A stretch of DNA of 64,000 nt, taken from the NCBI GenBank assembly GCA_973895155.1, contig OZ316897.1:9633832-9697831 (forward strand), in the 5' to 3' direction. Every line of letters begins with the position of its first letter. Position 1 is the first letter of the stretch. The stretch comes from Marsupella aquatica. Its lineage: Eukaryota; Plantae; Marchantiophyta. The notes below the pieces were generated by a model. The model worked only from the letters and a program-made list of their open reading frames with translations, had not been told where the DNA came from and searched no databases. Made by a program: the position numbers and the translations under genes. Positions 2,055 through 64,000 of the stretch are shown piece after piece.

Positions 2055-5000
2055 TTACGCTACTTTTGAGCGGTACTCTCCCAGTGCCCATATAGGAAAG
2101 ATATTTCGATATGCTGAATAAGAGATCATGCAGTTCTTGTTGAAAACACCGGAAATTTCCTGGAACCAAACAGGTCAGATCATAAGGAATCTCCAAAACA
2201 GAAAGAAAAATGAGAAATAATCTGTTTCTAAGTTCTACTTGGAGACCTCTGCATTGTGATAATTTTCAAGTAGTTACGGCCAACTTAAATATCTTCATGC
2301 AGACATCCTACATGATATGGCGAGACACTACAAACACGACCATAAGAACGTCATCCTGCTGTGTAAAACATATTCACCTGCTGTGGAAAATCCCCATTTT
2401 CAAATTGGGAATTGATTAGGACAGTTGCTCCTCTGTGAAGGGGCTTTGGATCTCTTTCAGCCTGTGTAAACAAATTTGACCAGCTAGTATGAGTACCTTA
2501 GTTGGAGAACAGTGAATGTGCATTGTCAACAAAACACATCAGATTGACCATATAATGAACTTCTTGCTAGGCTTAGAGTTGAAATCCACAGAAAGTATGA
2601 CTAAAAGTTCCACTACTCTTTAACGGTGCACTTTAGCACTAGACTTCACCTGCCCAGCAGCTATTAAAGCCAGGAGTGCCCATGAGGTACCAACCACTTG
2701 GGCCTTGCCCCCTTCTAGTGATGTATAAACCTGTAAAATGCAGTCCCTGTAAGTCGTTAAATAATTGCATTCGATTCCAGCACTGAAGGATTCGCAAAAG
2801 AAGCTCATATTCAAGGAGACTGTATATGGTGGCTACATACCATATCCTGGCAGGACAAATGACTCTCCCCCCAGCCACCTCCTTGTTCCTGCTTCTCGAG
2901 TAGGAAGTCACAAGCCTTCCGAATGGCACTTGAGGATGAGTAGGTTTCTCCTGCAGCGATCAGACCCACCACTCCAAACCAAGTGCCATATAAGTAGCAC
3001 ACGCCCCAGTTGCCATACCTGAAATCAGTACCGTGACGATTATTCTAAGCCTCTGATTGCGTTCCTTTCAATCCCCATGGTAAAAAAAGCTTGCACATGT
3101 AAAAAATCTTCTTCAAATGCTTTCAGGTGCGCACTGACGCTAGACATGTTTCTGGTAACATTTAAACTTCAAATGCAAAGAGGTGCTACGTTGCGACAAA
3201 GATTCTGAAATATGAACATGATTGCCTTCTGCCCTTAGAACTCGTTGAGGTCAATTCGATTTTGCAATCCGATCAAGAAATGGAGTCTGGAACATTTCAG
3301 GTGGATACAGAAGCCACAGGTGTGATTAAAAACATCCCAAATTTCCCTACCAATCATCACGCGAAGCTCACAAACGCTTTTCTTCTAGTTATTTTCTGGG
3401 TGTGAAGAACCACAATTGCAGTCACTTAAAAAGAGTATTGAAGCTTAGACCGTGAACATGTCTGCTTAAAATAGACGCTAAATGGAATAATGACGCCACG
3501 AAAATAAGGGATTGGTACCATGATCCATTTGGAGCTTGGTCATTTTTAATAAAGCTCCTTGCACGAGCGATAAATGTTGACACTTCGTGTGTCCGATGGG
3601 TTGGATACTTTTTGCGGAAAGCTGCCAATGCCGTAAGACAGGCTGATGTGCATTCCACGAACCTGGAAGCACCGTTTCATTTTCCTTAGTAGCCAATAAT
3701 CGATATCATATCCAATAAGAACAACTCCTACTGATAAAGTTTCTCCCTAGAGTTCACTCAAATGATTTTTGCAGCATATCCAATAAGAACAACTCCTACT
3801 GATGAAGTTTCTCCCTAGAGTACACTCAAATGATTTTTGCAAAAATCATTTGAGTGAACCTGCCTTTCTCTCACACATTGAATTATCCCTCGAAGAAAAT
3901 AACCCAAATACTCACGAGTAGTCAATCATTATCTTGCAGAGAGACTCCGAGGGGTTTAAGTACTGGATCATATTATTGCCAACAGTGTGTCAGTTAGCGT
4001 TTGCCTGACAAAGCAATATTTCGTTCGACCCAAGCCTGAACAGAATGAGAGCTAGGAAGTGGACGGGAAGCAATTCAAAGATCAGACTCCACATCTCACG
4101 TCTTGCAACTCCTTCATGGTTATCTTGCAGCAAAAATGTCAAAAATCAAGTCTAAAAACCCTACGGTAGTGGCACCTGTGACTTTGATGCTTTGAAATTT
4201 ATCCGAAACACTCTCTAATGGATTGTTGAGGTTCTGCTTACTCACCTCAAGCCAGGGATAAGAACGAGTACTCTCATAACTTGCACATCCGCCATCTTTG
4301 TTCTGTAAATGCCCACCGAATAGCTTTAATTAGGGTCCACATCTATCTAGCCCAAACCATGCAAGACAACGCCTTCAAGAGGGTCCAGCCGGAAAAACCC
4401 AACAAAATTCTCTTCGTTGGATTGTTTAGAATATCATTAATTAATGATTACTTTGGACGATAACTAATCATGACATCACGTGAAAGTAGCAGCTCATACT
4501 TGGTAAGTTAGAATAACATTGACGCAATCGAACAGTCTCTCATCCGGAATGGGCTCCCCAACAAGATCGCTTGGAAAACTTGAGAGAATCAGTTCAGCCT
4601 GCAGTGAGATATACGTCAATTTTGCAATTTTGAAGAGGCAGGACTATTCCAGATTTCAAGAAATCCTTCGGACAGGAAACCTAGTTGGCAGAGGTGTACC
4701 TTCAAACCTTCAGATGAGCAGTCTGAAACTGACCATCCGTGATCTCCTACAGAGAACGGCCAAGCACCCTTAGAAACATGCCTGTACCAATCACTCAGTA
4801 TGCCTGGGCTGTCTTCTTGTACCTTGAAGCACACAGAAAATTCACAAGCTGGAATTACTACTTCCTGTAAGACTAAGCATGATTATTACATTTTCTTAGG
4901 GCCAAGTCCCAACACAGTATGAACATCTCCTAGACTCGTCTTCTGCCGGATGAGAAAGGTTTATTCAACTTTTTCTGCTGGAAACAATTGTGCAGATCCT

Positions 5001-8000
5001 CAACGACGTTTCAGAAAGATCAAGAACGTTCTGACATGACCTGTAACCTATCCAACTCTTACTGATGCATTTCTATTCTCACAATCTAGAATGACGTAAC
5101 CTTGAAGGCGTAATAAAAAGGATACCTGTGTCTGGTCAAGGTAAAAGTGGGCCTTCTTCAACAGAGAGCTAGTTTCCTTTGGCAATCCTGTGGAGGCTAG
5201 GGCTTGAATCGCAAACGCTGTGTCCCACAGTTGACTACCATTGTACCCCTGCAGTTACACGGATCATACACAGCATATTCACGGGATAAGGTAAGATGAC
5301 AACTACAATCTTTAGGCAATTGGCGATTGATGAAAGTTCAAAACGGAAGTGACTTAGATCTTTGAAGCCTCTATTCGAAAACTATTAAAGTTCCCCAAAA
5401 GGAATCACTGACACTCAGGTTCCTGGTCCTATTGTTGTGGTGTGATACACATACCTGCATTTTCAAGCCATCTTCAGCAAGCCATAGATAGTCTTTCACT
5501 CTTGCTAGATGTTTTCGGAAGGCATCTGAGTTCGGATCCTCCACCCAGCATGCCAACATGTTCAGAGCCTGCACCAGCACACCCGAACACCTCAGAAATC
5601 TTAGGACGGAACCAATCTGAAAGAGAAAGCACAGCAACACTAGATTACTGATGAGTTTTGAATCTTTATGACAAGAAACAACTCTTCTAGGATACAAAGA
5701 TTCTTATCACCACAACAGGAGGTTAATTGCTGGGTCTGGAAAGAAAAAAAATAGATAGAGAAGGGGCCGAGAACCTTGTTCACAGGTCCAATATCAATAT
5801 AATGGGTACTCTCATCCTCATAGTGTATGTGCTTGATTGCTTCAGCCAAAGCTATTTCTCTGAGTTTAGATCCTGGCCAGCTTTGCAGCACAGGCTCGCC
5901 CACTTTATGTAGCGTTCCCCATAGAACGATTTGCAGCTTAGAATGAGGATTATACAGGTCCTCCTGATTTAAGTTACGAGGAAGTCAAAATGCAATCCAG
6001 CAGCCATGAACGGAAAACTGAAACTGCAACATTGCAAGCCATGAAACCAGTATGAAAAAATTGCCATGGTCGTTACCTGCCAGAACTTTGTGACAGGAAA
6101 TTGGATTCTGCTACAAGTAACACACAATACTGAGAACAGATTAGTGCTAAAACTGTTTCTATGTGTACAAAACCCTTCCGAGAAAACTTCCGGATATCCA
6201 ATATTCAGATGAGTAGTCATCAACACACCTTGCAACATTCATTTCGGGCTCTATTCCAGTCGATGCTACTGTATTTTTGACAAAAGATTTCTTTCCTGAT
6301 ATCCTTGACCAAAGACGTCAATTCTCCAGTGAATCTCCGTCCATAGACATAGCTCATGGGTAGATATACCATTCGACAATGACACCACATCCGACCTGTA
6401 ACCAGTCAATTTATCTCTTAGCAACACCACACGCAGATTGACGAAATGCATCGGCCCCAGATGCAATATGTAATGACCGAAACGCAAATTAGAAACGACT
6501 CACCTGGGTGCACAGGTAAGACGTAAGGCAATAACCACATTTCTGGGAGCAATGGATTGTTGCCAGACCATTCAAACACTCCCAAAACCTGTACGTCCAG
6601 CACACAACTTAGTACAGCTTAAAAGCAAAAAGCAACTGCAAAAGATGCATAGGAGGTCTGTTGGGTGTGGAAATAAATCAGAAGGAGGTAAATATTATTC
6701 ACAAGAAGTAATCACCGAAAGCCAAAACTTTCCCCATGAAGTTATTCCTGTAGCTCCTCCGTGCAGCAATATCCAGTCTCTTCCACGTTCAAGTGCCTCT
6801 TGATACCTGACATCGAATCCGCCACCGTCTCCTAGCAGTCTAAGAGTCACGTAATTGAGAGCTGAGCCAATCATCGTACTGTGTCCAGCGATATGTAAAC
6901 CCCATCCTCCATCCGAGTTCTGCATTAAATCATGACCATAAACCGTCATTTAGTTGTATCTGTTGGAAGTGAACCACACACAAACAGATGATGTCATGAA
7001 AGGCCTGTAGCTCACTATTTGAGCAGTACGATATAGTGACGAGGTCCTAGGTCAATTCCAGCCGGTCCATGTAGATGAAAATTCCATTATGGTATCATAT
7101 ACCCACAGGATAGGGAATTTCTTTTGAACCGAGTGTGGCTCATGGGAAGGTGTTGGAAATGAACCATGATGCTGCAGGCATAAGGGCCTGTAGTTCAGTG
7201 GTACAGCACTACAATGCACACGGGTCCTAGGTGCAAGTACTAGCAGATCCATGTTGATGAAAGTTCGAGCAGTTCCTGTTACCTACTAGACGCTACGTGC
7301 GATGGACAATTAGTTGCACAGAAATCAGTCGAAGCTTAGTCAAGCTTGAAAGTAGAGTAACTGATCTTAACAACCTTTTACCTACTAGAGGCTACGTGCG
7401 ATGGACAGTTCCTTGCACAGAATCAGTCAAGCTTGAAAGTAGAGTCCCTAATCTTACCAATTATGCGTAGTTTCTTCACAGTATTCCACGACGTTGCTTG
7501 TATGTCAAGATTGAGAGTCACTAATTTTAACAATTATACTATCTTCACATTATTTCACGACGTTTCTTGTATGTCAGGAGTCCCGTAGAGACTGCAAAGT
7601 CCAAACAAAACCTGATGGGCTACGTGCGATGAACAGTTCGTTGCACGAAAATCAGTCGAAGCTCAGTCAAACTTGGAAGGAGAGTCAACAATTATACTAT
7701 CTTGACATTATTATACGATGTTTCTTGTATGTCAGGATTCCCGTAGAGACAGCAAAAACATTTCTCAAAGTCTGAACAAAACCTGATGGTTGTACAGATA
7801 TCGTCGGATTTCGTGTCGGTAAGGTTCAGGTAAGGTCTCATCCAATGCTCTGGTGACATAAAGGGCAACGACCTGAAACAGACACACAGTAGTTGAAGAA
7901 GTGACGAACAAAGACTTGCTGCCGGGAATCCGAACGAAGCATCAGCAGACTTAAGAAGTGGAAATGAGAGCAGCTGACATAATTTTCGAAAGATCAGTCG

Positions 8001-9898: not shown

Positions 9899-10139
9899 CG
9901 GGAAAACAATTAATCAAATCCAATGGCTATGGATCTTTCCCGCCCAGGAGTATTTTTTGTAGTGAGACTAAGGACTGAAAAGAGCGGGATCCCTTACTAT
10001 AGTTGTAAATGTTCTCTATCAATAGTTAGGGAAAACAATTAATCAAATCCAACGGCTATGGATCTTTCCCGCCCAGGAGTTTTTTTGTAATGGGATGAAG
10101 GACGAAAAAAAGCAGGGTCCCTTATTATAGTTGTAGATG
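9899..10139. repeat. ~130-bp direct duplication
   Basis: gggaaaacaattaatcaaatccaa(t/c)ggctatggatctttcccgcccaggagt...cctta(c/t)tatagttgta occurs twice. Confidence 0.85.
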
Positions 10140-10470
10140 GGCCTGTCAAAGCACAGTTGATGGCTAATGCCCATTAGGGAGTGTCAAAAGCACAGTTGAA
10201 CCTGAGTTATGGCAGCTAATGCCCATTAGGGCGTGTCAAAGCACAGTTCTCCCTGAGTTACGGCGGCTAATGCCCATTAGGGCGTGTCAAAGCACAGTTG
10301 AACCTGAGTTATGGCAGCTAATGCCCATTAGGGCGTGTCAAAGCGCAGTTCTCCCTGAGTTACGGCGGCTAATGCCCATTAGGGCGTGTCAAAGCACAGT
10401 TGTACCTAAGTCACGATGGCTAATGCACATTAGGGCGTGTCAAAGCACAGTTGTCCCTGAGTTATGGCTT
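10140..10470. repeat. 51-bp tandem minisatellite, ~6 copies, with alternating unit variants
   Basis: ctaatgcccattagggcgtgtcaaagcacagtt core recurs every 51 bp; ORF 10219-10479 is only its translation. Confidence 0.92.
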
Positions 10471-11599
10471 AGGACATAAAATGCACTTACAGCCATGACA
10501 GAATCATGATGGGTACCAAAATAAGTACCCCATAAGGGTGTCAAAAAAAAAAGCTGTAACCAAAGTGTTATGGGAGAACTTTGACAAGCCCTATTATTGG
10601 CTTGCCTAGAAGAGGTGGGGAGCTCATGGATCCATGCCTAGGGAGGGGTAACAATCTATCTCCCACCCAAGGTATATGTTTGGCGAGCAATTAGATCTGT
10701 TAGATCACTTGGTGAGTACTTCCTGGGTGTCCACAAGTCTAGTGTCTAAGATTTGGCAAATTCAAAGCACAGCCTCTAATAAGAACAAGTGAGGAAAAGG
10801 CCATGTAAAGAAACAACTGAACTAAATCATAATCATTGATAGCAATCATTAAATCAATGTGAAGAAACAACTGAATTGAATCATAAATACTGATAGCAAT
10901 TGTTATATCAATGTGAAATGCTAAACTTTAGAGTGCTTATCATAAGATTTGGCAAATTTGAACCACAGCCTTTAATAAGAACGAGTGAGGAAAATTAAGG
11001 CCATAAACAACTTAACCAAATCACAAATCACTGTACCAACGGTTCAATCAATGTGAAATTGAACCCCCACCCCCAATCCCCTATGCTTCCTAGCGCCAAG
11101 CAGCTAGCCACCTTTCCAACTACTACATACCTTTCCAACCACTCAATTTTTTAATTTCCCCTTATGTCATCTCTGTTTGAGTCTCCCAAAAACTTTATGT
11201 TATTATTTTAATTTTAATTCCAGCCTATGATAGCTTCTTCTTTCTTATTCTTTCCATTTTTAAAATAAATGAATCCCCTTATACATAACTTTAACTTTTT
11301 CATTATCAAATTATTTGAGCAATATCTATTTTTTATCATTTCTGTCTCTGCGCCCCCCAACCCATCCAACGGCCCCTCATTAGGTGCCCTAGAATATAGG
11401 AAAGAAAAATCCAGCCACGGCTGAGCCCTCAACCTCAATACCTTATTATAGTTGTAGATACATTTAGATTATGAATCCTTACGGCTCTAGCCCCACCAGC
11501 AACCCCTGGCCTGGTGCCTCCTTGCATGTGGTCAAGACTGTTGAGCCTCAATTCTCCACGCTTTTCAACAATAAAAATTATACACTGAATACTAAAATT

Positions 11600-30101: not shown

Positions 30102-31946
30102 TCCCTATTACAAAGTCGTTCCACTCAAGCCACCAGGAAGAATTGTTTGCAGTTCAATGTCTTTACAATTTCTGGTTCATAGTAAGTAAATTCCCCACAA
30201 AGGCAAAGAATGGTATGACAAGTGCTGCCCAAGATGACTCTAACTTAATGTCATCAGAAGACGTGACATGAAGGTATGTAAGTATGTTAAGGTGTTCTTT
30301 GAGAATGTACGTATTAAAATTTTATGTCATCTTTCAAAGCCTAAACTTAGCCCATAATGAATGTCCTCTCTCACAACCTAAACTTAGCTTGCAAATGTAG
30401 ATGTGCCTCCTTGCCCATTCCATGCCACTCCCACACCCCCACGACGTCCCTGAGAATTTGTACTTAGGTGAAAAAGCACACCAGTCCCTTGGCCTCGCTT
30501 CCGGCCAAAATGTCCAACTCCCTCACAAAAGATTTTATGGCAAGCAACATTGCCACCATTGATTGACCCCATACGGTTAATTAAAGATTGTTTGAGTATG
30601 GGCATGCACACTCCCCTCATTCCTTCGTTAGCGGGCTCTTCCTTGGTTCTCCATTTGTCAGGTTACCCTTGCCCATTCCTAAAAGAAAATTGTGCCCATT
30701 TTAAAAGACAACAAACTCCTGTAGCTGACTATTTAAACCCTAAACCAAGCAGCCAACCAGGCTGTTCAACACTACTAGTAAATTGATTAGAAGATATCTA
30801 GGATGGGTTCCCTCCTACTTGTTAAGTCTCCATCTTGCCACATGGTGAAATTGCATTAAACACCTTTCAGCCCCCCAACCAGCTTTCATCCCCTCTTAAT
30901 TCCCTATTGGCTACATGCACAATTGTTGGATCCTTTCCCCTCCTTTAATTAGATCACGGATCAAGGTACAGTCGCAACAACGCTGTATTTACGCTAACCA
31001 CTACCTTAAGGCGTCAATGAATGATTGTGGCCAGCTATACATAGGGTAGTCCATAGAAAAAATTGTGTTTTTACCACTTCACACAAGTGGAGTTTTAACA
31101 CGTGACAGACTATTTTGCAGTAAGGACATTGAGCTGGTAGGATAAGGACACCTTCCAGTTCACATAAACCCAATCATATCAAACCACATTCAATTGATAA
31201 GTCTTTCCTAAAGGTACTACAGCGTTGGAAGGACCAGTGTAGTCTTTCACTCATATTGTTATTTGGTTTGACTGAATCCATAACAGCGGAGCAGAGAGCA
31301 GAGCAGCCCACCTTGACAAAAGGTTTGTCCTTGGAGTTTTTATGTTTGCTCTTAGGTAGTCTATAGCTTTGAGTAGAACCTCTACGTACTTGTGCATAGC
31401 TTGGAATACAATGGAAATTAATTGCAAAAGTAAATTGCTAGCTTGGCTAAAGAGAATAACTTGGCTCCCAAATTGTCACCTAGACTACTCGTGAGGAAAG
31501 TCTACTGTCGCCTCAACATCGATAATATGAGGAAGGATTGTTTACCCTTGTCGGAAAACAAGGGTGAATTTTTTATGTGCAATGGAAGAAGATGGAACCA
31601 GGGTCGTGGCCTTGGTCATGGCTTGTAGTGAGCACAGAAAAAAAGACTGGCGTTATTGGACAATTCCTTTTATGAAGCCTTTCAAACAATTGATGATTGT
31701 TGGCAACAAGCATAAGAGTTCTCATGTTTGGAGGTAATTTTTGGGACTCTACACTTTGGTTTCATCATTGCAGTGCATCAGCCATGACTAACATTTTATT
31801 TTCTTATGCAGTCCCAACAGCATTGTTGGCAGGCAAAGGACCGCATTCAGTTCTTTTTTACATTCCAGCATGGATAATCTCAGGTTCATTTCATCTTTGC
31901 TTCATCAAGTTTTGTTGAATGTACTTAGCTTTTGATTAATGTTTTA

Positions 31947-32286
31947 TGTCACACCATTCTGAGTAGTGTAGTAGTATATCGTGCTATTAGAGTATGTACG
32001 TTTGGTATGAGTGCTATTGGAGCCGATAAGGTTCTGTCAGGTTTGTGTGAGAGGGTACTTCTCACTTGTGAGGCATTGAAAGGTCATCTTTCAATGTTGA
32101 GCCTTGGAGAGAGAGGAGCTTGAGGAGCTTGAGTGTGGCTGTGGTGACTGTGAGCTCCGCTTGTGTAACGTGGATTCCTTGAGTAGTGCAAGGTGCGTTG
32201 GCTTGACATACGTGTGTGATCGGATCAGTGCGGGATCGATGGGGTATTGTTGACCGGGATCGTTGCACCGATTGTATGGGAGATTA
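31947..32286 (+). repeat. Terminal repeat A1 (340 bp); second copy A2 at 41016-41355
   Basis: tgtcacaccattctgag...gtatgggagatta; four substitutions counted between A1 and A2. Confidence 0.95.
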
Positions 32287-32297
32287 CATTGAAAGAT
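32286..32297 (+). promoter_or_regulatory. Putative self-priming primer-binding site (Tf1/sushi type)
   Basis: ACATTGAAAGAT is the exact reverse complement of ATCTTTCAATGT at 32086-32097 inside A1. No TGG-type tRNA PBS follows the repeat. Confidence 0.65.
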
Positions 32298-32555
32298 CAC
32301 ATTCGAAATCTGTTGTACGGACTGTGCGGATAGAAGTTCGATTGATTGAGTTGTCGACGGTTCGTGGTAGCTCGGATCGTGTGTTGTTATCGAACAGATT
32401 GTTGGTATCTTGACCTGTATCGTTGTTGTTCGATCGGCCTGTTTCCTGATCGATGTACAGATCTGTGATTGGTGACAGGTTTTGAGTTGGAGGTCGATTG
32501 ATGATTCATGGAGGAAAGCGAATGTTGAGTAGATGTTGGACAGTGGAAGTCGATC

Positions 32556-32646
32556 CGTGAGGCTTCAGATCCGATTGCCGGCTACTGTGAGGCTTCAGAT
32601 CTGATTGTCGGCTACTGTGGGGCTTCAGATCTGATTGCCGGCTATT
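32556..32646 (+). repeat. 30-bp tandem repeat, 3 copies, in the retroelement leader
   Basis: gtg(a/g)ggcttcagatc(c/t)gattg(c/t)cggcta occurs three times. Confidence 0.9.
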
Positions 32647-32873
32647 GTTGGACGATGTTGGCAAGGCGCAGGTGAAGCGACGGCTCTTTTCCTGAAGGAA
32701 CGGAGCTGCCAATGCCCCGTGCGACGGTATCATCGTTTCAGTGAAAGAAACGAGGGTCAAAGGTGTTGAATCAAGCTGCTGCCAATTCTGCGTTTTTCAT
32801 GAAAGAAATCGACAGTTTTCGGGAGCTTTTCGTGAAGGAAGTAGTCGTTTTTGGGGTCAGGTGTGAGGCGCAT

Positions 32874-33070
32874 GAGGCCACCCATCCCGAAAGTGCTCCC
32901 AACCGCGAGCGCGAAGTCACCCATTGCGAGCGCAGGCAGGCGCGAGGTCGAGGTCACCCATCCCGGGGCTATTCCGGGCCGTGAGCGCGAGGGGAGGCAC
33001 AAGGTCGAGCGCGAGGAGGTCACCCATCCCAGGGCTATTCCTGGCCGCGAGCGCTTAACTGGCAAGTTCT
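32874..33070 (-). promoter_or_regulatory. 5S rRNA-derived Pol III internal control region: one full A-IE-C copy plus three partial copies
   Basis: Reverse complement of 33014-33070 is AGAACTTGCCAGTTAAGCGCTCGCGGCCAGGAATAGCCCTGGGATGGGTGACCTCCT. It aligns ungapped to plant 5S as recalled from memory (AGAACTCCGCAGTTAAGCGTGCTTGGGCGAGAGTAGTACTAGGATGGGTGACCTCCT), 43/57 identical. Confidence 0.85.
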
Positions 33071-33792
33071 CATCCCACCTTGTGTACACACAAGCTTTGA
33101 CAACTTGTTGTTTAGATTCAAGCGCCAGGGGGCTTTATACACTTCCCGGTTTGTTTAGAGGCCTATTTTAGGCCAAATCAGAGGCTGTTTTAGGGTTTTT
33201 GATACTTCTGAGTCCATCTAGACTCACAGATTGAACCAATTTTGCCTTGGTTCTCATCTACAACATTGGAGTGCCATTGTGAAGCCTATTATGAAGGCTC
33301 TTCCTTGAACCTTATGCACATTGTCATATTGATTTGCATTTGCTTTTGTGTGGAGAGTTGAATGGTATCCATTCTTGTTTCTGGATCCTCTTCACACATG
33401 TTTCCTGTTTATGCGCCATGTTAGTTTCGTGTGGGCGCTTGATTCCATAGGAGTGATCCGGGTTTGCAACTGGACATTCTAGTGTGCTGTGTATTTCTCT
33501 CTTGGTGATGTTGGAGTGATGCCCAACACACCATGGTGAGTGCTTGTGGTGCTGACAGGGATAGATTGCCCTTAGGGTTAGCACATAGATTAGGTTAGGG
33601 TTGGTCACCACGGATTCTTCTGGTGCTGCTGGATTACCCGATGAACGACGGACCGGTTTCACTCGGAGTGGGGCACAGTTTTGGCCAACGGCATTGGTAG
33701 CAGTCAGCAGTGCAGCTTCAGACAGTGATTTTGATGAGGACTCAGTGACCAGTTCTCCTCATCATCAGGTGGTTGCACCTTTGTTGTGGGAT

Positions 33793-36700
33793 ATGGACGA
33801 GATGTACGGGGCTACAAAGGGCCCATGACGATACTCTGGTGCAGTTGGCACAATTGATCTGGATGACTTCATCCAGGAGTTTGATACGTGGTGCGATATG
33901 CAGACATTGCGTAATGTCACGTTGTTTACCCCTTTCATGGCATGGAAGGGATTATTCCAGCATTTGGAGGGGTCACCCATGGATGACTACCATGAGTTTC
34001 GGAAGGCTCATTTGGTTGAGATTGAGGCATGGAGGCAGCATTGGTTGCCTAATTACGTGTCCATCACCTATGGCACTAGTGCGGCTGCCCAACCAATTAC
34101 CACAGCTGCTGCTTCTTCTAGTAGCACTAGCCAGAGTGGCACACCATCCACCAGCAGCACTCCAGCAGCATCCACCACTACTCCTGCCGGTGTGATTGTG
34201 ACAGGAACTGGAGTTGCGCCAGCATTTAATCCTGTGGTGGAATTCTTTGAGGTACTGAAGTAGAACTATCAGGGTGTGAGAACTGATAAGTTGAAGGGTC
34301 TTCAAGAGTTCCAACGCAAGACTGGAGAGAGCCTACGTGAGGCATACACACGTATGCGCAGATTGATCACTGTCACCAAGGGAGTGACAGAGGCTCAGGC
34401 AGTCCAGTTTTGGTATGCAATTCTGGACAGAGAATTGCGACGCAGAGTGAGAGATGTCACTCTACTTAGGGATGCAGATCCCACATTAGTAGTTGTTTTC
34501 ATCCTTTCTGAGCGCATTGAGCTCAATATGGTGAATGAGAAGGTGGTGACTTTCGGATTTGCCAAGGAAGCACCAAAGGCTGCATCTACATCCACACCAC
34601 AGCCTACTGCACGGAAGAGCCAGAGGGAGAAGCCTACTGCACGAGAGTCTACTAGCCAGAGACCTGTGCCCTCTTATGCTGGACAACAGTCAGGATGTTG
34701 GACCTGTGGTGGGGATCATGCACAGAGATATTGTCCAGATCATAGAGGATCAGGGGGAGCATCAGCGCCTGATCAGCGACAGTGTGATCACTGTGGAGCT
34801 CCTGGACACACCAAGGATAGGTGTTTCTCACTCCACCCTGAGTTACGGAGAGGAGGATCCCGTACACATGATCAGGGAAGAGGAGGAGGAGGTAGAGGTG
34901 GTGGACATGGTCGTGGCATGCCACATGCAGAGAGACAGGGAGGTGACGCTGCCCCTCCTATAACCATAGATCCAAAGGATGCTAAGATTGCTCAATTGGA
35001 GCAACAACTAGCTGCCATGGCTAGTTCCCAGGTGAGACCTAATTCTGGTGATGGGGCATCTACATCCTATGGACCTTCCACATCCCATGGTCCTTCCACA
35101 TCTTATGGAGCTGATGGAGACCTTGCCACCATGGGATTCATGTGTGGCACTGCACATATTGATGCATCAGCAGCTTTGACACGTGGGGCAGCCAAAGCTC
35201 TTGAGCCCCGAGGAGCAGTAATGGAGTTAGATCCACAAAGGGGGGATGCACGTCGGCAGACAAAGCTTCCTCAGTCTTTTACATTATCAGAGACAGTTCA
35301 GACTGCCTCTATGAACCCGGTTCGGACAAACCCTGATGTGGGTAAGTTGGCAGAATCAGGTAGTGATGCAGTAGGGATGACAGGTACCTTGCTGGGGGCG
35401 GCTACTGCCATAGTACGCACCCCATTATTTTCAGTGACAGACATGCTAAACTTGGGAGTTGGTCCTGCAGAAGTGTTCAGATTGGCAGCTACACTCTGTG
35501 AGGACACTCCAGTGGTTGCTTCCCATGCAGAAGCAACTTGCAGTGTTGATGCAGTGAAGACCATGCCACCTACTGCTACTAGTGAGACATGGCATGCAGC
35601 AGCAACGAGGTTGGTGGATTTACCAGCACACCCTGCATTTGAGAGGACTAGGTTTAAACCTAGTGTTGTGTCATTGGATAATCGGAGGGGTATCTTCCGA
35701 TTAGTTGGGCCTTGTGGAGCAGTATACCAGCCAGAGAGAGTGTTACTGGATACTGGTGCTCAGCCCTTGATGTTGGGGAAGTCTGCCATACGTGGATTGG
35801 GATTGCGTCCAGAGGATTTGGAGGATTGTCCCTTTCCCATTCAGACTTCATTGGGGGGACCTACACCTACACAGCATATCATCAGGAGACCACTTGATTT
35901 GAGGATTCAGGAAGGTCATACCACAGATAGCTCCCAGATACAGGCGCGAGCTATTCTGACTAAGGCAGAGTCATATGATGTGTTGGTGGGATGTACAGTG
36001 CTCTACCCCATGGGATTTATTCTTGATTTTTGGGAGGAATCAGTGTCATATAGACCTGATTGGCAGTCAGGAGATGCTCAATTGAGCAAATTGCCAGTGA
36101 GATTTAGTGGACCTGTGGGAGGCTCTAAATCCACACCATTGTCTTTGGCAGCATTCAGTGGTGTAATTGCTGGACCTGATGATTTGATTGAGGGTAATGC
36201 GCATGCAGCCGATGTTTCACCATTGGAGGAGTCTCATGAGGAGCACATCATGCGAGGGTTACCTATTGGCAGTGTTGTGCCACCAGTGTGGGGCACTACA
36301 CAAGCCTTGCCACAGGCAACAGCACGATTGGTACATGATGCATGGCGTCATGCTTTTACACCACAGTCAGGAGTAGAGCAGTCTCTTGCAGATGGACCAT
36401 TGGATACCACTCCTATTGCTTGGCAATATCCACCGGAGGGTATTTGTTTGTTGGATCTTTTTGGTGGGATTAGCACTGGATTGGCTGCTGTTCTTCAGGC
36501 AGGAATTCCTGTGCGTCGTTATTTGTATGTGGAGACAGATGAGACAGCACGGAGGGTCTCATTGCGACATGTGGCTATGTTGGTGGATAGATATCCATAG
36601 TTGCTACCAGTGGATGTTGTTCGTGGTTATCAGCATGCACTACCTGCTGATATTTCATTGCTGGGGGCGGATCATCTGTATCGTGTTGGCCCCATTGATT

Positions 36701-37548
36701 TGGTGATTGCTGGTTGGCCATGTCAGGGCCAATCTAGAGCTGGCGTTGGGCATGGACTTCATGATCCACGCTCTGCATTGTTTTGGGAGATGTTACGGGT
36801 GCTACGTCATCTCTAGCTACATCAGACACAGTCTCCAGCATACATTTTGGAGAATATGCCATTGTTAGGTGATGATCGTAGTCGGATTGTTGCTAGTGTT
36901 CACCAGGTGAGGTCATGGATTGCACCTGCTATGTTATTGGATGCTGCACGTGTGGGTTCTCGTGCACATCGTCCACGCTTGTGGTGGACTAATTTGATCC
37001 CATGTGAGGTGCTGAAGCGTGCATTTGACAGCATTCCACGCTCACCAGCCTTAGTGGTGGATAATATTTTGGATCCAGGGCGTCGTGCACAGGGTGTGAC
37101 CCAACCTGATAGACCTCCATTGGCAATGGTCAATTCAGTTGGGTGCCCACGTTGTGCATTACCCACTCTTGTCAGCCACTCTACTTCATATGCATTCAGA
37201 GCAGGTGGCCCTGGACTTGTATGGGACACAGCTCTCCAGCAGTTAGTGGAGCCTACAGCTGATGAGAGAGAGCAAGCTATGAGATTTTTGACTGGCACCA
37301 CTGCAGTTGCCTCTGTGTCAGAGGGTTTGCGGCGCCAGGTTCTTGGTCAAGCAATGGATTTGAATTGTTTGACTTGGATTATTAGCTTAGGAGTAGCTGA
37401 ACAGTTGTGGATGCGCTTTGCTGGAATTACTGATTGTCCCTTGGTGAGCTTGCGGTCCACTGAGACAGTATTGACCACAGCTGGGGGCGAGCAGACAGTC
37501 CATGGACCTATGGCAGGATTGGCCAAGGCTGGACAAATTGTTGAGTAG
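33793..37548 (+). pseudogene. Retroelement ORF1: Gag (two Zn knuckles) - aspartic protease - C5 cytosine methyltransferase, with four in-frame stops
   Basis: ORFs 33601, 33898, 34276, 36601 and 36847 share one frame. Motifs: QEFQRKTGESLREAYTRM, CWTCGGDHAQRYC, CDHCGAPGHTKDRC, VLLDTGA. Stops at 33826, 34261, 36598, 36814. Confidence 0.9.
36439..37380 (+). pseudogene. DNMT3-like DNA (cytosine-5)-methyltransferase domain inside the polyprotein
   Basis: Motifs in canonical order: I LLDLFGGISTG, II YLYVETD, IV DLVIAGWPCQG (catalytic PC at 36718-36723), VI YILENM, VIII RAHRPRLWWTN, IX EPTADEREQAM, X RRQVLGQAMD. Confidence 0.9.
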
Positions 37549-40500
37549 GAAGGGACTGCTCAATCTACTGCTAAATAGCAATCATCGGCTATCTCTTCTA
37601 CCCTACAAAGAGATTAGGGATTTGGTGGAGAGTTGGGAACCACAGCTTGGCCCTAAGTTAACAGGGGAGGAGAGACGTCGCATGCATCGATTCCTGAAGA
37701 GTTATTGGAATTGTTTTGCATTCAGCATGAAGGATTTGGGGACATTGAAGGGCCCTGGTATTCAGATTGAATTGGCTAGTGATGCGCCAATCTTTCGTAG
37801 ACCATACCGTTATAGTGACATGGAGAGAGCTCTGATTCAAAGCAGAACTCAAGATTTGTTGGAGGCTGGATTGGTGGAGATTTCATATGGGGAGTATGCA
37901 TCTGCCACAGTGATGCCAGCCAAGAAGGATGTGCATGGCAATTACACAGATAGGCGCATGTGTGGTGATTACAGACCTATTAATCGCCAGACAAAATCTG
38001 ATCGATATGCCATGCCCACACCTGAGGAGATCTTTGATGCTGTGGGGCATGCAAAGGTTTTCAGTTCATTGGATCTGAGGGCAGGATACCATTAGCTTCC
38101 AATTAGGCATGCTGACAGGTCCAAGACAACATTCTGGGGGATTGATTCTTATGGCAAAGATCGTTTATATCAATGGTTATTCTTACCATTTGGGTTGAAG
38201 AATGCACCAGCTGAGTTCCAGAGAGTCATGGATCGAATCCTTGCAGGTTTGGATTTTGTCAGATGTTATATTGATGATATTTTGGTCTATTCTTCTACTG
38301 TGGAAGAACATCAGCAGCACTTGCAGATTGTGTTGGAGAGATTGAGAGCACATGGGTTGAAGCTCCATCCTGGCAAGTGTAAGTTCTTCCAAGACCAGAT
38401 TGAGTATTTGGGCCACACTATATACCCAGGGGGATTGGGTGTACAGCAGACTAAAGTGGAGGCCATTACACAGATTCCTCATCCTACTGATGTGAGCAGA
38501 GTTCGTGCATTCTTGGGATTGGCGAGCTACTATAGGAGGTATGTTAAAGGATTTAGCCAGCTTGCTAAACCTTTAACCATACTCACTAAGTTGGATCAGG
38601 AATGGACTTGGGGTGATGACCAAGAGCATGCCTTTCAGGAGTTGAAGCAAAGGTTGGCATCATCCCCTATTTTGAGAAGATCCATTTCAGGCAGACCATT
38701 TCAGCTACACACTGATTGGAGTGGAGTAGGACTTGGAGCAGTGCTGACTCAAAAGGATGATGAGGGGAATGAGTTTGTTGTGGCTTATGCCAATAGATCA
38801 AACAATTCAGCAGAGGCTAAGTATAGCTCTTATGAGGGAGAGTGTTTGGCAGCAGTGTGGGCTGTTGCACACTTTCGTTGCTACTTGTTTGGTAACCCCT
38901 TCACCTTGATCACTGATCATCAGCCTCTTAAGTGGTTAATGGAGTCTGACAAGCTTACAGGGAAGCTTGCACGATGGGCATTGTTGTTACAGGAGTATGA
39001 TTTCCAGGTGGTGCATAGGCCTGGAAAAGTGAACTTGGATGCAGATGGATTAAGCCGCAATCCATATACCAGTCAGCAAGATGAGACTGGAGCTAGATGG
39101 CATGATGAGTCAGATAAGGAGATGGTGCCAGGATGGCATGCATCTGCCTTTCTTTGTTGGGTGCCAGCATACAGTGGATCTATGGACTCTACCTCATTGG
39201 ATGGAGTGGATGATGAGTCTTCAGATGTGGATGTTGGTGAGGTAACTTCTGGACAACAAGATATTCACAATGATGTGAGAGTGTTGGAATATCTGCGCAG
39301 TGGTTCTATTGTTGGCAGTGTTGATGCCAAGGAACGTGACAGGGTTCTACAGAGAGCCAAGAGATTTCGATGGGAGGGAAACCATCTTTTGAGAGTACTG
39401 CATGATGGTAGGATGTTGGTGGTACCAAAACCATCACAATGAGTACATTTGGTGCGACATGCGCACGAGGAGTTGGGTCACTTTGGTGTGAAGCGCACTT
39501 ACAGCTTGCTGCAGACACAGTATTGGTGGCGTGGTATGCACACTCATGTCCAACAGTTGATAGCTAAGTGTGTGGTATGTGATAGAGTGAGAGCATCATT
39601 TAATGCTCCCACTCCCCAGTTGCACCCATTGCCGATCATGGGTTTGGGATATCGTTGGAGTTTGGATTTTGCTGGTCCATTACCTCTTACCCAACGTCAT
39701 AATCGGTATGTTTTGGTCATGGTGGAGCACTTCTCCAAGTGGATTGAGCTAGTGGCGTTGCCAGATAAAGCCAGTGGAGGAGTTGCTGCTACATTTTTGG
39801 ATCGTGTACTCAGTCATTTTGGAGCACCAGCTGAGGTGTTGACTGATCAAGGAAGTGAGTTCCATGGAGAGTTTGAGAGTTTGTGTGAACAAGCTCTGAT
39901 TGATCATCGTACTACCTCTCGTGATCATCCTGAGGCAGATGGATTAGCTGAGAGAGTTGTGCAAACTGTGAAGAGAGGATTGCGTAAGTATGGCTTGCAG
40001 GTTGGTCATCTGGGAGATTGGGATCTCCAGCTACCTTGGTTAGCTATGGGCTACCGTTTCAGTCGGCAAGCATCACTTGCATCCTTCTCACCTTACTTTT
40101 TGCTCTATGGTAGAGAGCCAGATTTGCCAGCAGCTATTCGTTGTGATGCTGCATCAGTTGTGAACTTGGATGATCCTGATGTTTGGGTCAAGGTGTGTTC
40201 AGAGAGAGCATGGGTATTCCAGCGAGTGATGCCCATGGCTTTTGACAACCTTGCTATTGCCCAACATCGTGATACTTTGAGGTATGTCACTATTCGTGGA
40301 GGAGGTTACCGTGCAAGCATTCGACGATTTCATCCTGGTGATTATGTTTATTTGCAGCAGATAGCACCCACCACACTTGATGTGACCGCAGGCTGGCCAA
40401 TCTTACGTGTGCGTGAAGTATTGCCTTCTGGTGTCCTGATGTTGGAGGGACGCGATGGTATGGTTTGGAAGGATCATGTGCGCAACTGTGCACCATGCCA

Positions 40501-40702
40501 CCTTCCCAACATTGATGGTACAGTAGATCCAAGCTTGGCACATGTTCGTGCTGGCTTGAAATGTATGTTGTGTGGATCTGCTCAGGGAGCAGCTACTATA
40601 TTGATTTGTGATCAGTGTTCTAGAGGATGGCACATGTCATGTTTGACACCACCATTGCAGGTGATTCCTAGTGGATCATGGTTGTGTCCTCAGTGTCGGT
40701 GA
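37502..40702 (+). pseudogene. Retroelement pol: reverse transcriptase - RNase H - DDE integrase - PHD finger, with two in-frame stops
   Basis: RT: RMCGDYRPIN, LDLRAGYH*L, LPFGLKNAP, YIDD. RNase H: LHTDWS, TDH, DADGLSR. Integrase: HAHEELGH..CVVC, SLDFAG, LTDQG, GLAER. PHD: CMLC..LICDQCSRGWHMSC..GSWLCPQC. Stops at 38093 and 39440. Confidence 0.95.
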
Positions 40703-40866: not shown

Positions 40867-40877
40867 AGGGGGGCGAT
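40867..40877 (+). promoter_or_regulatory. Polypurine tract
   Basis: AGGGGGGCGAT lies directly before TGTGGG, the start of repeat B1. Confidence 0.7.
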
Positions 40878-41492
40878 TGTGGGTTTTGGACATGTGTGGA
40901 CATGAGTTCCACTTGTATTCCATTCTCTTGTATTTATGATGTGGCAGTGTGACTATGTCTGGATGTATGTGACAAGCGATGTATGTTGTGTAGCGATATG
41001 TATGCGCACGACAGCTGTCACACCATTCTGAGTAGTGTATTAGTATATCGTGCTATTAGAGTATGTACGTTTGGTATGAGTGCTATTGGAGCCGATAAGG
41101 TTCTGTCAGGTTTGTGTGAGAGGGTACTTCTCACTTGTGAGGCATTGAAAGGTCATCTTTCAATGTTGAGCCTTGGAGAGAGAGGAGCTTGAGGAGCTTG
41201 AGTGTGGCTATGGTGACTGTGAGCTCCGCTTGTGTAACGTGGATTCCTTGAGTAGTGCAAGGTGCGTTGGCTTGACATACGTGTGTAATCAGATCAGTGC
41301 GGGATCGATGGGGTATTGTTGACCGGGATCGTTGCACCGATTGTATGGGAGATTATTGTGGGTTTTGGACATGTGTGGACATGAGTTCCACTTGTATTCC
41401 ATTCTCTTGTATTTGTGATGTGGCAGTGTGACTATGTCTGGATGTATGTGACAAGCGATGTATGTTGTGTAGCGATATGTATGCGCACGACA
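40878..41492 (+). repeat. 3' terminal block B1(40878-41013)-GC-A2(41016-41355)-T-B2(41357-41492)
   Basis: B copies are 136 bp and differ at one position. B1/A2 junction is the palindrome GACAGCTGTC. Confidence 0.95.
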
Positions 41493-49379: not shown

Positions 49380-50220
49380 TGATGGAAATCTTGATAGAGA
49401 AATTCTGGAGCTATGGACAAATGATTATCATAACCATCATGTTTTTGGAGAACAACAAAAATTGAATGGCCATCATAGCAATGGACATCATAGCAAGCGT
49501 CACACAATCCACCCCCAAAAATATTGATGGACAATCTTGATAGGGAAATTTCAAAGCCATGGTCAAATTGTTGCTGACCACAAGGATCCGCAGACATCTA
49601 AGCCATGGTCAACAAATCCCTTACCATAACCATCATGCTTATGAAGGACAATGGACAAATTGAATAACATCACAATGAGGGTAACACTATCCATCCCCAA
49701 AAAATTGATGGACAATCTTGATAGGGAAATTTCGAAGCCATGGTCAAATTGTTGCTAACCACAAGGATCTGCAAACATCTAAGCCATGATCAACAAATGC
49801 CTTACCATAACCATCATACTTTTGCAAGACAATGGTGACAAATTGAATGAACATAAGGGCAAGGGTCACACTAACCACCCCCACAAAATTGATGGATAAT
49901 CTTGATAGGAAAATTACGAAGCCATGGTCAAATTGTTGCTAACCACAAGGATCCGCAAACATCTAAACCATGGTCAACAAATGCCTTACCATAACCATCA
50001 TACTTTTGCAAGACAATGGTGACAAATTGAATGAACATCAGGGCAAGGGTCACACTAACCACCCCCACAAAATTGATGGATAATCTTGATAGGAAAATTA
50101 CGAAGCCATGGTCAAATTGTTGCTAACCACAAGGATTCACAGACATCTAAGCCATGGTCAACCAATTCCTTACCATATTAACCGTCATGCTATTATAGGA
50201 CAATGGACAAATTGAATGAA
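49380..50220. repeat. ~182-bp tandem repeat, ~4.5 copies, upstream of the TET-like ORF
   Basis: gatgga(c/t)aatcttgatagg..aagccatggtcaaattgttgct.accacaaggat at ~49526, 49707, 49891, 50075. Confidence 0.92.
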
Positions 50221-53200
50221 TATACCATAAGCATCATTCACTAATGCCACATAACCTTTTGAATATCAAAGTCTAGACTTCAAGGCTGAAAATCATTTCA
50301 TTATACCATTGGTTTTATGGCAAACAATCTTGAATACCTTATGCAATACATTCCCAACATAACTCTACTACATTATTTGCAAACAATGTGAAAGACTACC
50401 TTTGCACTAGAAGCCAAAATCAAAATTCTATAAGAAAATAGTTTGTATTGAGTTACCTACCTGGTTTGTAAATTGATTAGCCATGAAAAAATGTGGTAAC
50501 ACAACCTACATCAACATTTCAAAATGGTCAGCAAAAGTACATTAGATCAGACTAAGAGCTTCAATAAATGTCATGACAACATTGGAGGGTTGTAAAAAAT
50601 TCAGGTTTCTTTGATATCTAGTATACAATGCGAGCTTTGTCTATATTGTGTCTAAGCTTTAATGGGATATTGATCATATGAATGGTGGACAGATCTTACT
50701 TGGCTTGTATAAAGTACATAGTATTATGATTGTGGAGAAGTGCACTCATTAAGAATACTTAGATAACTTTACCAAATGAATATAAAATGTTAACTGGACA
50801 TATAATAGCTAGTTTTGCATTGCTAAAGAGCGTTCCAATATTGCAACATATTTGGATATCCAAGTAATCAAAATATTTTTCATATCCAACATCAAGAATA
50901 ACATCACACAAAATCAAGGACATGTAATATCAAGAATACTGAACATCAAGAATAAGAAACATCAAGGATAAGAAATATCAAGAATCCATAACATGAAGAA
51001 TATGGCATATGAAGAATAAAACATTACACCAAGAACGAGGGATTTGCTTGATCAAACCCCAAAATGAAATTGACATGCTATTTGGTCAGACCCCTGAGTG
51101 ATGCAGACCATTGATTGACCTTGAATCAATGTACACAAAACTTCAGCGGTCCTATCAAGTACGGAAATTCAATGTGGGATATGATCATGCAAATCCCTCC
51201 ACCAGGAATACATAATTGGACAGCCAGGTTGCAGGCAAGGCTTTTCTAGTCCAATCCTTCCATAAGTTGTATTAATCTTCTTCTTGTCTAGTTTGTGAAT
51301 CAAAAGGACCCAGCCCTTTTAAAGAGTGACTCTCTACTGATTTAAATGAATTTTTATTATCAAGTGGTTCAACCCTAAACAATTTATGGTCCTAAGTTGC
51401 CTAAGGCAGAGGAATAATCAAATCCCGTGAAACAGGTTGATAAGGAGAAAGATAGACCAAAGCAGGACACTGACCAGACTAGCTTATGGAGAAATGCCTC
51501 CAGGTATCTAAACATAAATTTCTAAATCTTTGGTTGTTTTTTGGAACTGAAATCTCACAGAAAAGGAGACTAAAATAGGCCAGTACAATATCAGGGGGGC
51601 TCAAGTCCACAACAAACCCTGACAACCAGACACATTTATGAGCCATCCCAATCAAGGGACAAAAGGCCCAGAATCCAAAAGAATCCCCCCTGCCCCCCCC
51701 CAACTTCTCTACCGCAACAGAAATCTAAAACACCAAAGAATACAACCTACAAGCTCAAATCCCACCCACCCCTAAAAAAACCTAGGAGCCATCCCACATG
51801 TAAGAGGATGCAGTAAATCAAGCCCAACCTAATCAAACCAAATAAGAGGAGAACAAGCTGACATGGATGTATTTCCTAAAGGACAGTTTAACTGTTTTCA
51901 CCAATGGATAGCCGCACTAGGGCGGATCAAAATGCCTACACAACATACAACCCCCACAGACCTCAAAAATATTAGGTCCGAGGGAAAGAAGCAACCCAAC
52001 ATGCCCCAAAGCACCAAGGGAAGGGAGAACTAATCCAACTCTTACCATAACCCTGATCAACCACTCCCTTTTAAGTCAAGATGCCTCCAGACTAGGGCTA
52101 CAGAACAACACAACAACCCCAAAGGGAATCCGAGGCTTCCCAAGCATAGCAGCAGAAGGCTGAGGGAACTGGCAGACATTGGGCCAGTGTGGGTATGAAG
52201 ATAGCAATGCGTGCTCCATCCATGAGACCCCGATCCCCAGCCTCAATGAATTCTAGTTCAACCGAGCTCCAATGACACAATTGTGCAAATTAAGCCTCAA
52301 TTTTCATGACGTACTATCCGCAGTTGGCTCCACACGAAACCAAGATCAAAGTAGGATTCAAACTCGGCTGGATTCAGGTGGTTCGGTGATAGGAGAAAAG
52401 GGTGGGCACCCAAGTTTTTCAGAGGGCAATGTGCAGAAGGGGAGACTTCACTATAATTTGCAAGTTATTTGTACATACAACAGATCACTGCAAAGCAGGA
52501 GACTAGCAAAAACAACGTAACCTTTTCACTTTCTTGCTATTGAGAATACATTATCGCTGGACATATTCGTGATGAATATGATAAGAACTGTCAGCATGAA
52601 ACTAACGATAACAACTACTGGCTCTAAACAAATCTACAAACATTTGATCAATCATTGGAACACCTTCAACAATAATTGACAGACAGCGTCTCATGTACAA
52701 GAGCAAGTGGGAGGCAGTGCATGTGCCAAAGGATGCAGCGATTTTGACTGCATTAGGTTTCCAGTTTAGAGATCACAGCAACGGTAGCAGGTTTTGGAGC
52801 CTAGCACACGCACAGAGGCCCATGTCCATGGCAACAGCTTTGGAGCCCAGCGGACTGATGAATCTCCATGGCTATGGCAGCTCGTGAGTGTGGTCCTGTA
52901 CACTCACAAGCCCCTCGACGAGACCCCGCATAGCTAAGGGGCATTCCGCTAACATTCCCACTGAGTCAGAAAAGTAACTCTGGCACTTTTTGGCAGACAC
53001 TCAACGGAGCCTGGTTGGGGCTACGGGCTCTGGCTGGGACTCAGGATCCGAGCCTTTGCTGGGCACCTCTAGACAGAATGACTGACCAATACTTGGCTTT
53101 AGTGGTATTTATATGGACAGTGGCGATTTAAAGAAATCAATGGTGCCCAATGTAAAACTAAATCTGGAAATAAATTTCAAATTTTATTTTTTTTAACTTT

Positions 53201-63150: not shown

Positions 63151-64000
63151 ACGCACAACACACAGTTTTGTAGAGTAGAGAGTTCGTCACCGTCCGTTTC
63201 ACAATTCGTTCTTCCTTCATTCCTTCCTTCCTTCCTTGCGCATCTGTTGTTGTGTTGTTCTCGAGCGAAGCTCTTCCTCAATCCTCACACATTGCGACGA
63301 TATGCGCTCTCCCTCACCACGACGAGAACAGAACAATACCTAAAACGCGCGAGGCTACAGTTCGTTGTGTCCTTCTTTCGGGCAAGCTCGCGAAGTTTTG
63401 TGAATCGACATCGCAACTGCACTGGTTGTCCGAGGCAGCACTCCGCGGTACGGTTCCCGATCACTCGCATGACTGCCTGCGCTCCTTATTATGTGGTTTT
63501 CGCTTGCTCTCCTCGTTTTTCTTGCGGCGTTTTTTTTGTTTTTTCTTTGTTTAGAGTTTTTTTTGTCGATTGAGTGTCGATACTCTTGCTCCGCGCCAGC
63601 GCTCCGCGATGTACGTGTTTTCTGACCACCCATTTCTTGCGCTTGTTTTTATGGGCTTTTCTCTTGCCCTCGACGTCGTTCCTCGTTTTTCTGCTGGCGT
63701 ATGTCTATTTTGTGAATTTTTTTATTAGGTGTTTGTCGTCCCCTGCGTTTTTCAACCTTTCCCCAGTCGATTGTCAATTGTGTCGTTCAGAGTCTGGAAC
63801 GCTTATTTTCGGTTGGTTGGCGATTGCGCATCGTCTGCCTTTCGATTATGTAACAGTCTGTGGACGGTTTTTGGAAAATTTGTGTCCGTTATGGAAAATG
63901 GGATCAGTTGTTTCCCTACGTCCTTGGCAGCGCCTTCCGTTCTCACATGTATGAAATTGGTTGGCAGGAAGAACCAATGTTGTTTTCCTGCTTAGTTTGC

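Follow-up and report, generated by a model that had tools for sequence, protein, structure and literature searches.

The closest described system for the locus analyzed here is Cassandra, the 'TRIMp3' of Kojima 2024, for which Kalendar 2008 is cited (PMC10886601, PMC10853983). Cassandra elements keep an ~70-bp core of 5S rRNA, comprising the A box, the intermediate element (IE), and the C box, as their promoter (PMC10853983; PMC10886601). They have been reported from monocots, dicots, and ferns (PMC10853983), and their autonomous partner is unknown (PMC10886601). Promoters derived from 5S also form the heads of SINE3, AmnSINE, and Ajax, in SINEs and nemertean TRIMs (PMC10886601). Upstream of plant Pol III (tRNA) genes, a TATA motif with a CAA motif after it represents a conserved signature (PMC3082873). 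As hosts of retrotransposons that carry a DNA methyltransferase (DNMT), the abstract of one report names dinoflagellates and the charophyte Klebsormidium (PMC5890265). In our literature searches, we encountered neither an autonomous LTR element nor a bryophyte for which a 5S module has been described. Here we analyze a 5S-derived cassette located in the leader of a coding gypsy element from the liverwort Marsupella aquatica, within a 64,000-nucleotide stretch of DNA to which we refer as the window.

Results

We first describe the element that hosts the cassette. It is a 9.4-kb Ty3/gypsy element that carries a gag-like region, a PF00145 segment, RT/RNase H, and an integrase on the plus strand. 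Its features are as follows.

31947-32286, plus strand: 5' terminal repeat 'A', 340 nt, 98.8% identical to 41016-41355
33773-34195 and 34276-36600, plus strand: gag-like region in two frames, carrying a weak protease match
36601-36816, plus strand: C5 DNA-methyltransferase fragment (PF00145, 36.1 bits)
38195-39442, plus strand: RT/RNase H
39449-40702, plus strand: integrase with a C-terminal PHD finger (PF00628, E=1.9e-10)
41016-41355, plus strand: 3' terminal repeat 'A', 340 nt, 98.8% identical to the 5' copy
40876-41013 and 41355-41492: 138-nt 'B' repeats on either side of the 3' 'A' repeat, from repeat comparison

The order of RT, RNase H, and integrase, the terminal direct repeats, and gag-like homologues that bear PF00145 together place the element in Ty3/gypsy. 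In the window copy, the coding part is distributed over several frames; from its 98.8% identical repeats, we judge this copy to be young. Full-length homologues of the gag-like protein, 42-50% identical, are found in Marchantia polymorpha, and most of them carry PF00145 (P0001 among them), with shorter matches in Calypogeia and Sphagnum. Two M. polymorpha loci, L001 and L002, hold the whole leader of ~2.9 kb and share an A-internal-B-A-B terminal design in which the B copies are 100% identical (repeats at 2826-3122 and 13134-13657 in L001, and at 3123-3412 and 13144-13663 in L002). Because these two relatives share the layout, it does not represent a defect of the window copy. In L002, an ORF with a PHD match is located at the position corresponding to the PHD finger of the window integrase. 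A block at the gag start (33788-34045) is 83-84% identical at the DNA level to L001, L002, and the Calypogeia fissa locus L004; it is far better kept than expected from the remainder of the protein, which is 45-50% identical, and it has the highest read depth of all in read contigs from other organisms.

The 5S patch is located in the untranslated leader, 590-850 nt inside the 5' repeat and antisense to gag-pol. The initial annotation had described it as lying antisense in the leader of an autonomous-type gypsy element that encodes a methyltransferase, and the PF00145 match, the RT, and the integrase on the plus strand bear this out. Box searches of the window revealed a single 5S module (32873-33139) and none in or near the 3' repeat. 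The leader contains two further repeat types, both downstream of the cassette when read on the minus strand: three 30-nt tandem repeats at 32557-32648 (GTGAGGCTTCAGATC...) and a palindromic 15-mer, CTTTTCNTGAAGGAA, which occurs three times at 32686-32840. Tandem arrays elsewhere in the window, at 10136-10519 (51 nt), 49497-50229 (184 nt), and 61348-63151 (~265 nt), are unrelated to the 5S patch. The parts of the cassette, in minus-strand order and with identities to the reference 5S introduced below, are as follows.

33133-33139, minus strand: TATAAAG, -30 to -24 from the predicted start
33101-33110, minus strand: CAACAAGTTG, initiator block of the CAACAAG type, with the predicted Pol III start at ~33109 and a C at -1 (33110)
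33046-33060, minus strand: box A (5S positions 50-64), core AGTTAAGCG exact at 33060-33052, 11/15 identical to the reference
33038-33043, minus strand: IE (5S positions 67-72), CAGGAA, 5/6 identical to the reference (CCGGAA)
33013-33030, minus strand: box C of unit 1 (5S positions 80-97), GGATGGGTGACCTCC exact at 33029-33015, 16/18 identical to the reference
32949-32988, minus strand: unit 2, a second copy of 5S positions ~56-95 that covers IE, box C, and the 3' part of box A but has no AGTTAA
32904-32933, minus strand: unit 3, shortened, GCGCTCGC and a partial box C (AATGGGTGAC)
32873-32912, minus strand: unit 4, GCGCTCGCGG, then an unrelated 14-nt middle, then box C (14/15)

We compared the cassette with a true 5S gene. 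As reference we used the 5S of a metagenome contig (L044), which is Rfam-confirmed (105.8 bits) but is not the host's own gene, and all identities are gapless. This 5S was found 0.7 kb downstream of the 3' end of an LSU rRNA; it lies on the strand opposite the LSU rRNA, as linked L-type rDNA (positions 1-530 and 1212-1330 of the contig), and its 5S type is the nearest to the window module. A pattern consisting of AGTTAAGCG, a 22-nt gap, and GGATGGGTGACC has one match in the window, an exact one on the minus strand (33060-33018), and 0 of 100 dinucleotide-preserving shuffles contain the box A-22 nt-box C pattern. The claim that box A, IE, and box C are kept at exact 5S spacing on the minus strand is thus confirmed. 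A drift of the positions between the boxes had been noticed as well, and the control elements are indeed identical to the reference at 32/39 positions versus 25/58 for the remaining positions 1-97 (Fisher p=1.4e-4), a contrast that is subject to ascertainment bias as the boxes themselves had drawn the annotator's eye. Limited to 5S positions 28-97, the same contrast yields p=0.035. Outside the boxes, positions 73-79 and 28-49 are identical to the reference, again not the host's 5S, at 5/7 and 12/22 sites, respectively. Positions 1-27 match at 7/27, and a 1-nt shift improves the match (TCAAAGC versus TCAAACC). The 22 nt that separate box A from box C match the reference, a bryophyte-type 5S, at 14/22 positions, and match angiosperm-type 5S and fetched Cassandra modules at 10-11/22 (hand-counted).

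Positions 98-119 match the reference at 7/22, which is the random level, and the 3' arm of 5S is thus absent, as originally proposed. The 5' arm had been described as absent too, but the 5' half is present, although badly decayed. A full-length ~120-nt RNA with helices I-V and a T-run terminator just past position ~120, as expected for a 5S rRNA gene, were not found next to the internal control region. The patch is a 5S derivative made of promoter parts only and not an rRNA gene, again in line with the initial annotation.

The same annotation had named the lack of a significant 5S match as an outcome that would refute its reading, and with the Rfam 5S family RF00001 this outcome was obtained: no match was found at the gathering score (38 bits) or at E<=10, in the whole window or in 1 kb around the patch. 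We calibrated this result with the same tool. True 5S genes score 73-106 bits, and genuine Cassandra LTR modules score 25-26 bits (E 0.2-0.3), below threshold, with one Cassandra type not listed at all. Since genuine Cassandra modules also fall below the threshold, the absent match does not refute a 5S origin, and we discounted it. The covariance model penalizes missing helices, and the shuffle-tested pattern statistic is decisive alone. A different 5S-like module with 37.3 bits, just below the Rfam threshold, was seen in several metagenome loci (L106 at 269-369, L109 at ~7400-7540, and also L015, L092, and L017). In L109, it is located in sense orientation between the two halves of a gypsy-type RT frame and may represent another 5S-insert retroelement family.

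We next analyzed the box C array. With GGATGGGTGACCTCC as query, box C-like copies are found at 33029-33015 (exact), 32963-32949 (1 mismatch), and 32887-32873 (2 mismatches). A repeat finder reports three 39-nt units (33016-33054, 32950-32988, and 32874-32912), and it assigns the short unit at 32904-32924 to a 21-nt family; all four coordinate pairs given for the patch by the initial annotation hold. Unit 2 is identical to unit 1 at 36/39 positions (92%), with 1 mismatch in its box C. Units 1, 2, and 4 can be written as GCGCTC(G/A)CGG, a 14-nt middle, and box C. In unit 4, the outer motifs match unit 1 at 24/25 positions and the middle at 4/14 (Fisher p=1.5e-5). In unit 3, minus-strand position 32925 is an A in the window and a G in most other copies among the read-contig sites listed. 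The AGTTAA half of box A is present in unit 1 only, and for this reason only unit 1 would qualify as a complete promoter; the downstream units appear to be tandem partial duplications that contain IE and box C but no usable box A. Each box C unit (32873-33054) is preceded by GCGCTCGCGG, a motif foreign to 5S that is as well kept as box C. A box C-like site on the plus strand at 30801-30815 has no box A at proper spacing, and we read it as a chance match.

Upstream of the internal control region, we identified two elements that add to the original observation, a TATA motif and a CAA-type initiator block. The predicted start at ~33109 lies 49 nt upstream of box A by 5S-type counting, and the CAA triplets of the cassette start at -1 and +2. 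For comparison, we used ~120 metagenome loci matching box A-N22-box C, which a rough sequence screen sorted into 45-54 true 5S genes and at least 55 Cassandra-type modules. In this set, the TATA-like motif starts at -29 to -27 in true 5S genes (n=45) and at -30 to -25 in Cassandra-type modules (n=55). A CAA triplet starts at 0 to +4 in Cassandra-type modules and is rare there in true 5S genes. An identical CAACAAGTTG is found in this position in a number of Cassandra-type modules, L007, L029, and L036 among them. The motifs TATA[AT]A and CAACAA each occur at ~0.0007-0.0009 per window position, and the chance of finding both in the correct 5-6-nt slots is ~2e-5, a product of frequencies that was computed after the motifs had been seen. 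The TATA motif at -30, the C at -1, and the CAA motif are the upstream elements of a plant type-1 Pol III promoter. With TATA and CAA at the proper distances, the cassette thus shows a complete plant type-1 Pol III promoter layout that goes beyond the internal control region alone, and this strengthens its reading as a promoter.

These upstream elements also bear on a role of the opposite strand. The sense leader RNA could pair with cellular 5S rRNA or the 5S RNP, for example for localization or packaging, as it shows perfect 15-nt and 9-nt complementarity to 5S rRNA, with the box C complement repeated and up to four leader stretches complementary to 5S positions ~56-95. Such pairing explains neither the minus-strand TATA and CAA motifs at promoter distances nor the spacing kept at the DNA level, and the 5S region in question (~56-95) is structured and protein-bound in vivo. 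We consider this explanation highly improbable.

We then asked how the cassette behaves in other copies of the element. The family is very abundant in two organisms, A and B (thousands of read-derived contigs from four runs), and the 5S patch is covered throughout in the family read contigs. Array joints differ among copies, leading from 33026 back to 32869, from 33053 back to 33016, or from 32975 with a skip to 33050, and unit number thus varies between copies by gain and loss. In one variant contig, eight other letters replace the 74 nt of 32976-33049, and box A and box C are still 22 nt apart. A second variant has a diverged 5' part with ATTTAAGCG, after which come the 22-nt spacer of unit 2 and box C. 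The block at ~32572-33243 has 2-6x the read depth of adjoining leader segments, which is not a clean measure but fits wider conservation. A depth spike at 32992-33075 in organism C was set aside, as it may be caused by true 5S rDNA aligning at ~83%. A metagenome scan with an element-specific pattern gave 0 matches, and a protein search with a 110-amino acid minus-strand ORF spanning the array gave none.

On the relevant strand, no box C with up to 3 mismatches was found in the M. polymorpha loci L001 and L002 and the Calypogeia locus L004, and these loci have no nhmmer match to the module at E<=10, no Rfam match, and no tRNA-like gene; no tRNA-like module was found in the window either. Since relatives with equal terminal design are without the module, it is probably a lineage-specific addition that is dispensable for the clade and lies outside the clade's replication machinery. 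Likewise, we rejected a function of the antisense RNA as reverse-transcription primer, with no terminator at the repeat boundary and relatives of equal terminal design that lack the module.

The deeper coverage of the block would also be expected if a foreign element, either a Cassandra-like solo LTR or a 5S-headed SINE, had inserted backwards into the leader of the founder, and the architecture of the cassette is that of Cassandra LTR modules. However, we found no LTR-like or terminal repeats and no initiator tRNA-Met primer binding site (PBS) around the block; a probe for this PBS gave only chance-level matches in the window. No SINE body, tail, terminator, flanking repeat, or target-site duplication was seen around the block, the CpG-rich domain described below continues unbroken into the terminal repeat, and the spacer is nearest to bryophyte-type 5S rather than to the fetched Cassandra modules. 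A nested insertion is thus very unlikely in our view.

We next considered the product that the predicted promoter would generate. On the minus strand, there is no T4+ run between the predicted start at 33109 and the left end of the element; the first such run, at 31644-31638, lies at a distance of 1466 nt. With the base composition taken into account, the lack of T-runs is not significant (P=0.25), and we thus rejected the idea that they are selected against on the antisense strand. Compared with shuffles, the predicted RNA folds no better in either its first 120 nt or the following 340 nt (z=-0.78 and -0.73, respectively), and the fold is not 5S-like. Because no T4+ terminator is found inside the element, no defined small RNA is predicted, and the idea of a defined antisense RNA is weakened. 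From the anatomy of the cassette, we infer the following sequence of events. TFIIIA would bind to box C, IE, and box A, and TFIIIC and TFIIIB would assemble over the TATA/CAA region. Pol III would then start near 33109 on the minus strand and read through the box C array and the leader toward the 5' repeat. With no canonical terminator in the element, transcription would continue across the leader and the 5' repeat.

The missing terminator, the lack of a special RNA fold, and the absent RF00001 match would also be in agreement with an inert relic, that is, a 5S gene or pseudogene captured once in the founder and decaying since, with the array arising by slippage in a GC-rich minisatellite. Relatives from M. 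polymorpha and Calypogeia manage without the module, unit number varies among copies as in ordinary leader minisatellites, and, the window copy being young, part of the apparent conservation in the family may represent shared descent. Simple decay, however, does not account for its uneven distribution, with well kept control elements next to drifted positions and a 3' arm at random level. It also does not account for TATA and CAA at proper distances, the latter rare at this place in the sampled true 5S genes, for a unit 4 in which box C is kept around an unrelated middle, or for a 22-nt gap maintained in variant copies. We therefore consider a relic unlikely, while giving it serious weight.

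Finally, we analyzed the base composition around the cassette, where the following domain is apparent.

32150-33050 (approximately), no strand: CpG-rich domain, end of the terminal repeat and first 760 nt of the leader

The CpG observed/expected ratio is 0.95 in the patch versus 0.0-0.6 in the coding part, where TG/CA ratios are 1.3-1.8, in agreement with the contrast drawn by the initial annotation between a CpG-rich patch and a TG/CA-rich coding region. CpG density peaks in the array and falls sharply at 33050-33150, and the domain is far wider than the patch. In the module-less L001 and L002, the CpG ratio is ~0.7-1.4 in the leader versus 0.57-0.78 from the gag start onward. As these M. polymorpha relatives show an equal contrast, the CpG-rich leader is independent of the 5S module, and the suggestion that the array forms a barrier against methylation is weakened, although a local effect is possible.

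This suggestion corresponds to an explanation in which the array provides a TFIIIA/TFIIIC platform that acts as a chromatin boundary without producing a useful RNA and divides an unmethylated leader near the promoter from the methylated body of an element with a methyltransferase of its own, which may be likened to extra-TFIIIC sites and tDNA barriers. The array is indeed found where the CpG-rich domain ends on its 3' side and CpG falls, and box C, a high-affinity TFIIIA site, is the part that has been multiplied. A boundary would also be indifferent to the missing terminator. On the other hand, a CpG-rich leader followed by a CpG-poorer body is found in M. polymorpha relatives without the module, and the kept TATA and CAA initiator motifs suggest initiation beyond mere binding. 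We regard a pure boundary function as improbable.

Discussion

Our preferred reading, which we believe has about an even chance of being correct, is that the cassette is a promoter-only derivative captured from a bryophyte-type 5S gene and kept antisense in the leader of a very high-copy, methyltransferase-carrying gypsy family, where it would probably fire on the minus strand. Its role would most likely be regulatory for the element, exerted either by an RNA antisense to the leader or by a complex of Pol III factors bound there. Among LTR retroelements, only Cassandra, from ferns and flowering plants, has so far been known to reuse the internal promoter of 5S. The window module would add autonomous elements and an older plant lineage to this picture, and it would demonstrate that an element can carry a Pol III promoter facing the opposite way. 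The window cassette, a case defined at the sequence level, provides a concrete object for asking how 5S modules get into retroelements. It may also serve as a cheap test system, in which a single Pol III promoter is combined with a box C array of variable length and natural relatives without the module exist in M. polymorpha. In a broader scenario, an autonomous family would have domesticated a host 5S-type Pol III promoter and would adjust its own expression or chromatin state with it, by way of a leader antisense RNA or of bound Pol III factors, such modules in autonomous elements of early land plants being the source of Cassandra-type TRIMs. If true, the family would be the first candidate relative for Cassandra, but we consider this scenario improbable.

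We compared the cassette with the known 5S-derived and DNMT-carrying systems. As in plant 5S genes, the native spacing of box A, IE, and box C is kept, and a TATA motif near -28 to -30 and a C at -1 are present. The cassette differs from these genes in that helix I, the 3' arm, the T-run terminator, and the Rfam match are missing and the 5' half is decayed. SINE3, AmnSINE, and Ajax resemble it in that the promoter part of 5S alone has been retained and reused by a retroelement; these elements, however, are short, non-autonomous, and sense-driven and belong to animal lineages. With the DNMT retrotransposons, the host element shares a C5-methyltransferase segment within the polyprotein region. 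The abstract describing those elements names dinoflagellates and charophytes, whereas the window element belongs to a bryophyte gypsy clade that is common to M. polymorpha and has a PHD-finger integrase.

The most detailed comparison is with Cassandra. In six fetched paired modules, TGGTATCAGAG is located 155-188 nt downstream of box A on the same strand. This PBS on the module strand identifies the six as Cassandra TRIMs with a sense LTR module. Modules located 2.8-3.0 kb upstream of a gypsy RT in two further loci (L111 and L104) had raised the possibility of an autonomous Cassandra, but they represent Cassandra arrays beside unrelated LTR elements. Cassandra elements are non-autonomous, non-coding, and 565-860 bp long, carry the module in both LTRs and in sense orientation to the initiator-tRNA PBS, and have a terminator. 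The window host, in contrast, is a 9.4-kb coding gag-pol gypsy element, not a short non-coding one (<~1 kb), with a single module in the internal leader, antisense to gag-pol, without such a PBS in the window, without a terminator, and with a box C array. The initial annotation had suggested that the patch may bear on the origin of Cassandra; the likeness in architecture is real, but leader location, antisense orientation, and a bryophyte-type spacer make independent capture appear more likely than common descent with Cassandra. In both, an ~70-nt 5S core is present in which A box, IE, and C box are kept while other 5S positions drift, and both remain below the Rfam 5S threshold. Both also have a TATA motif near -30 and CAACAAG(A/T)TG at the start, at equal distances, and this shared TATA/CAACAAG layout could reflect either common descent or convergence on the needs of plant Pol III.
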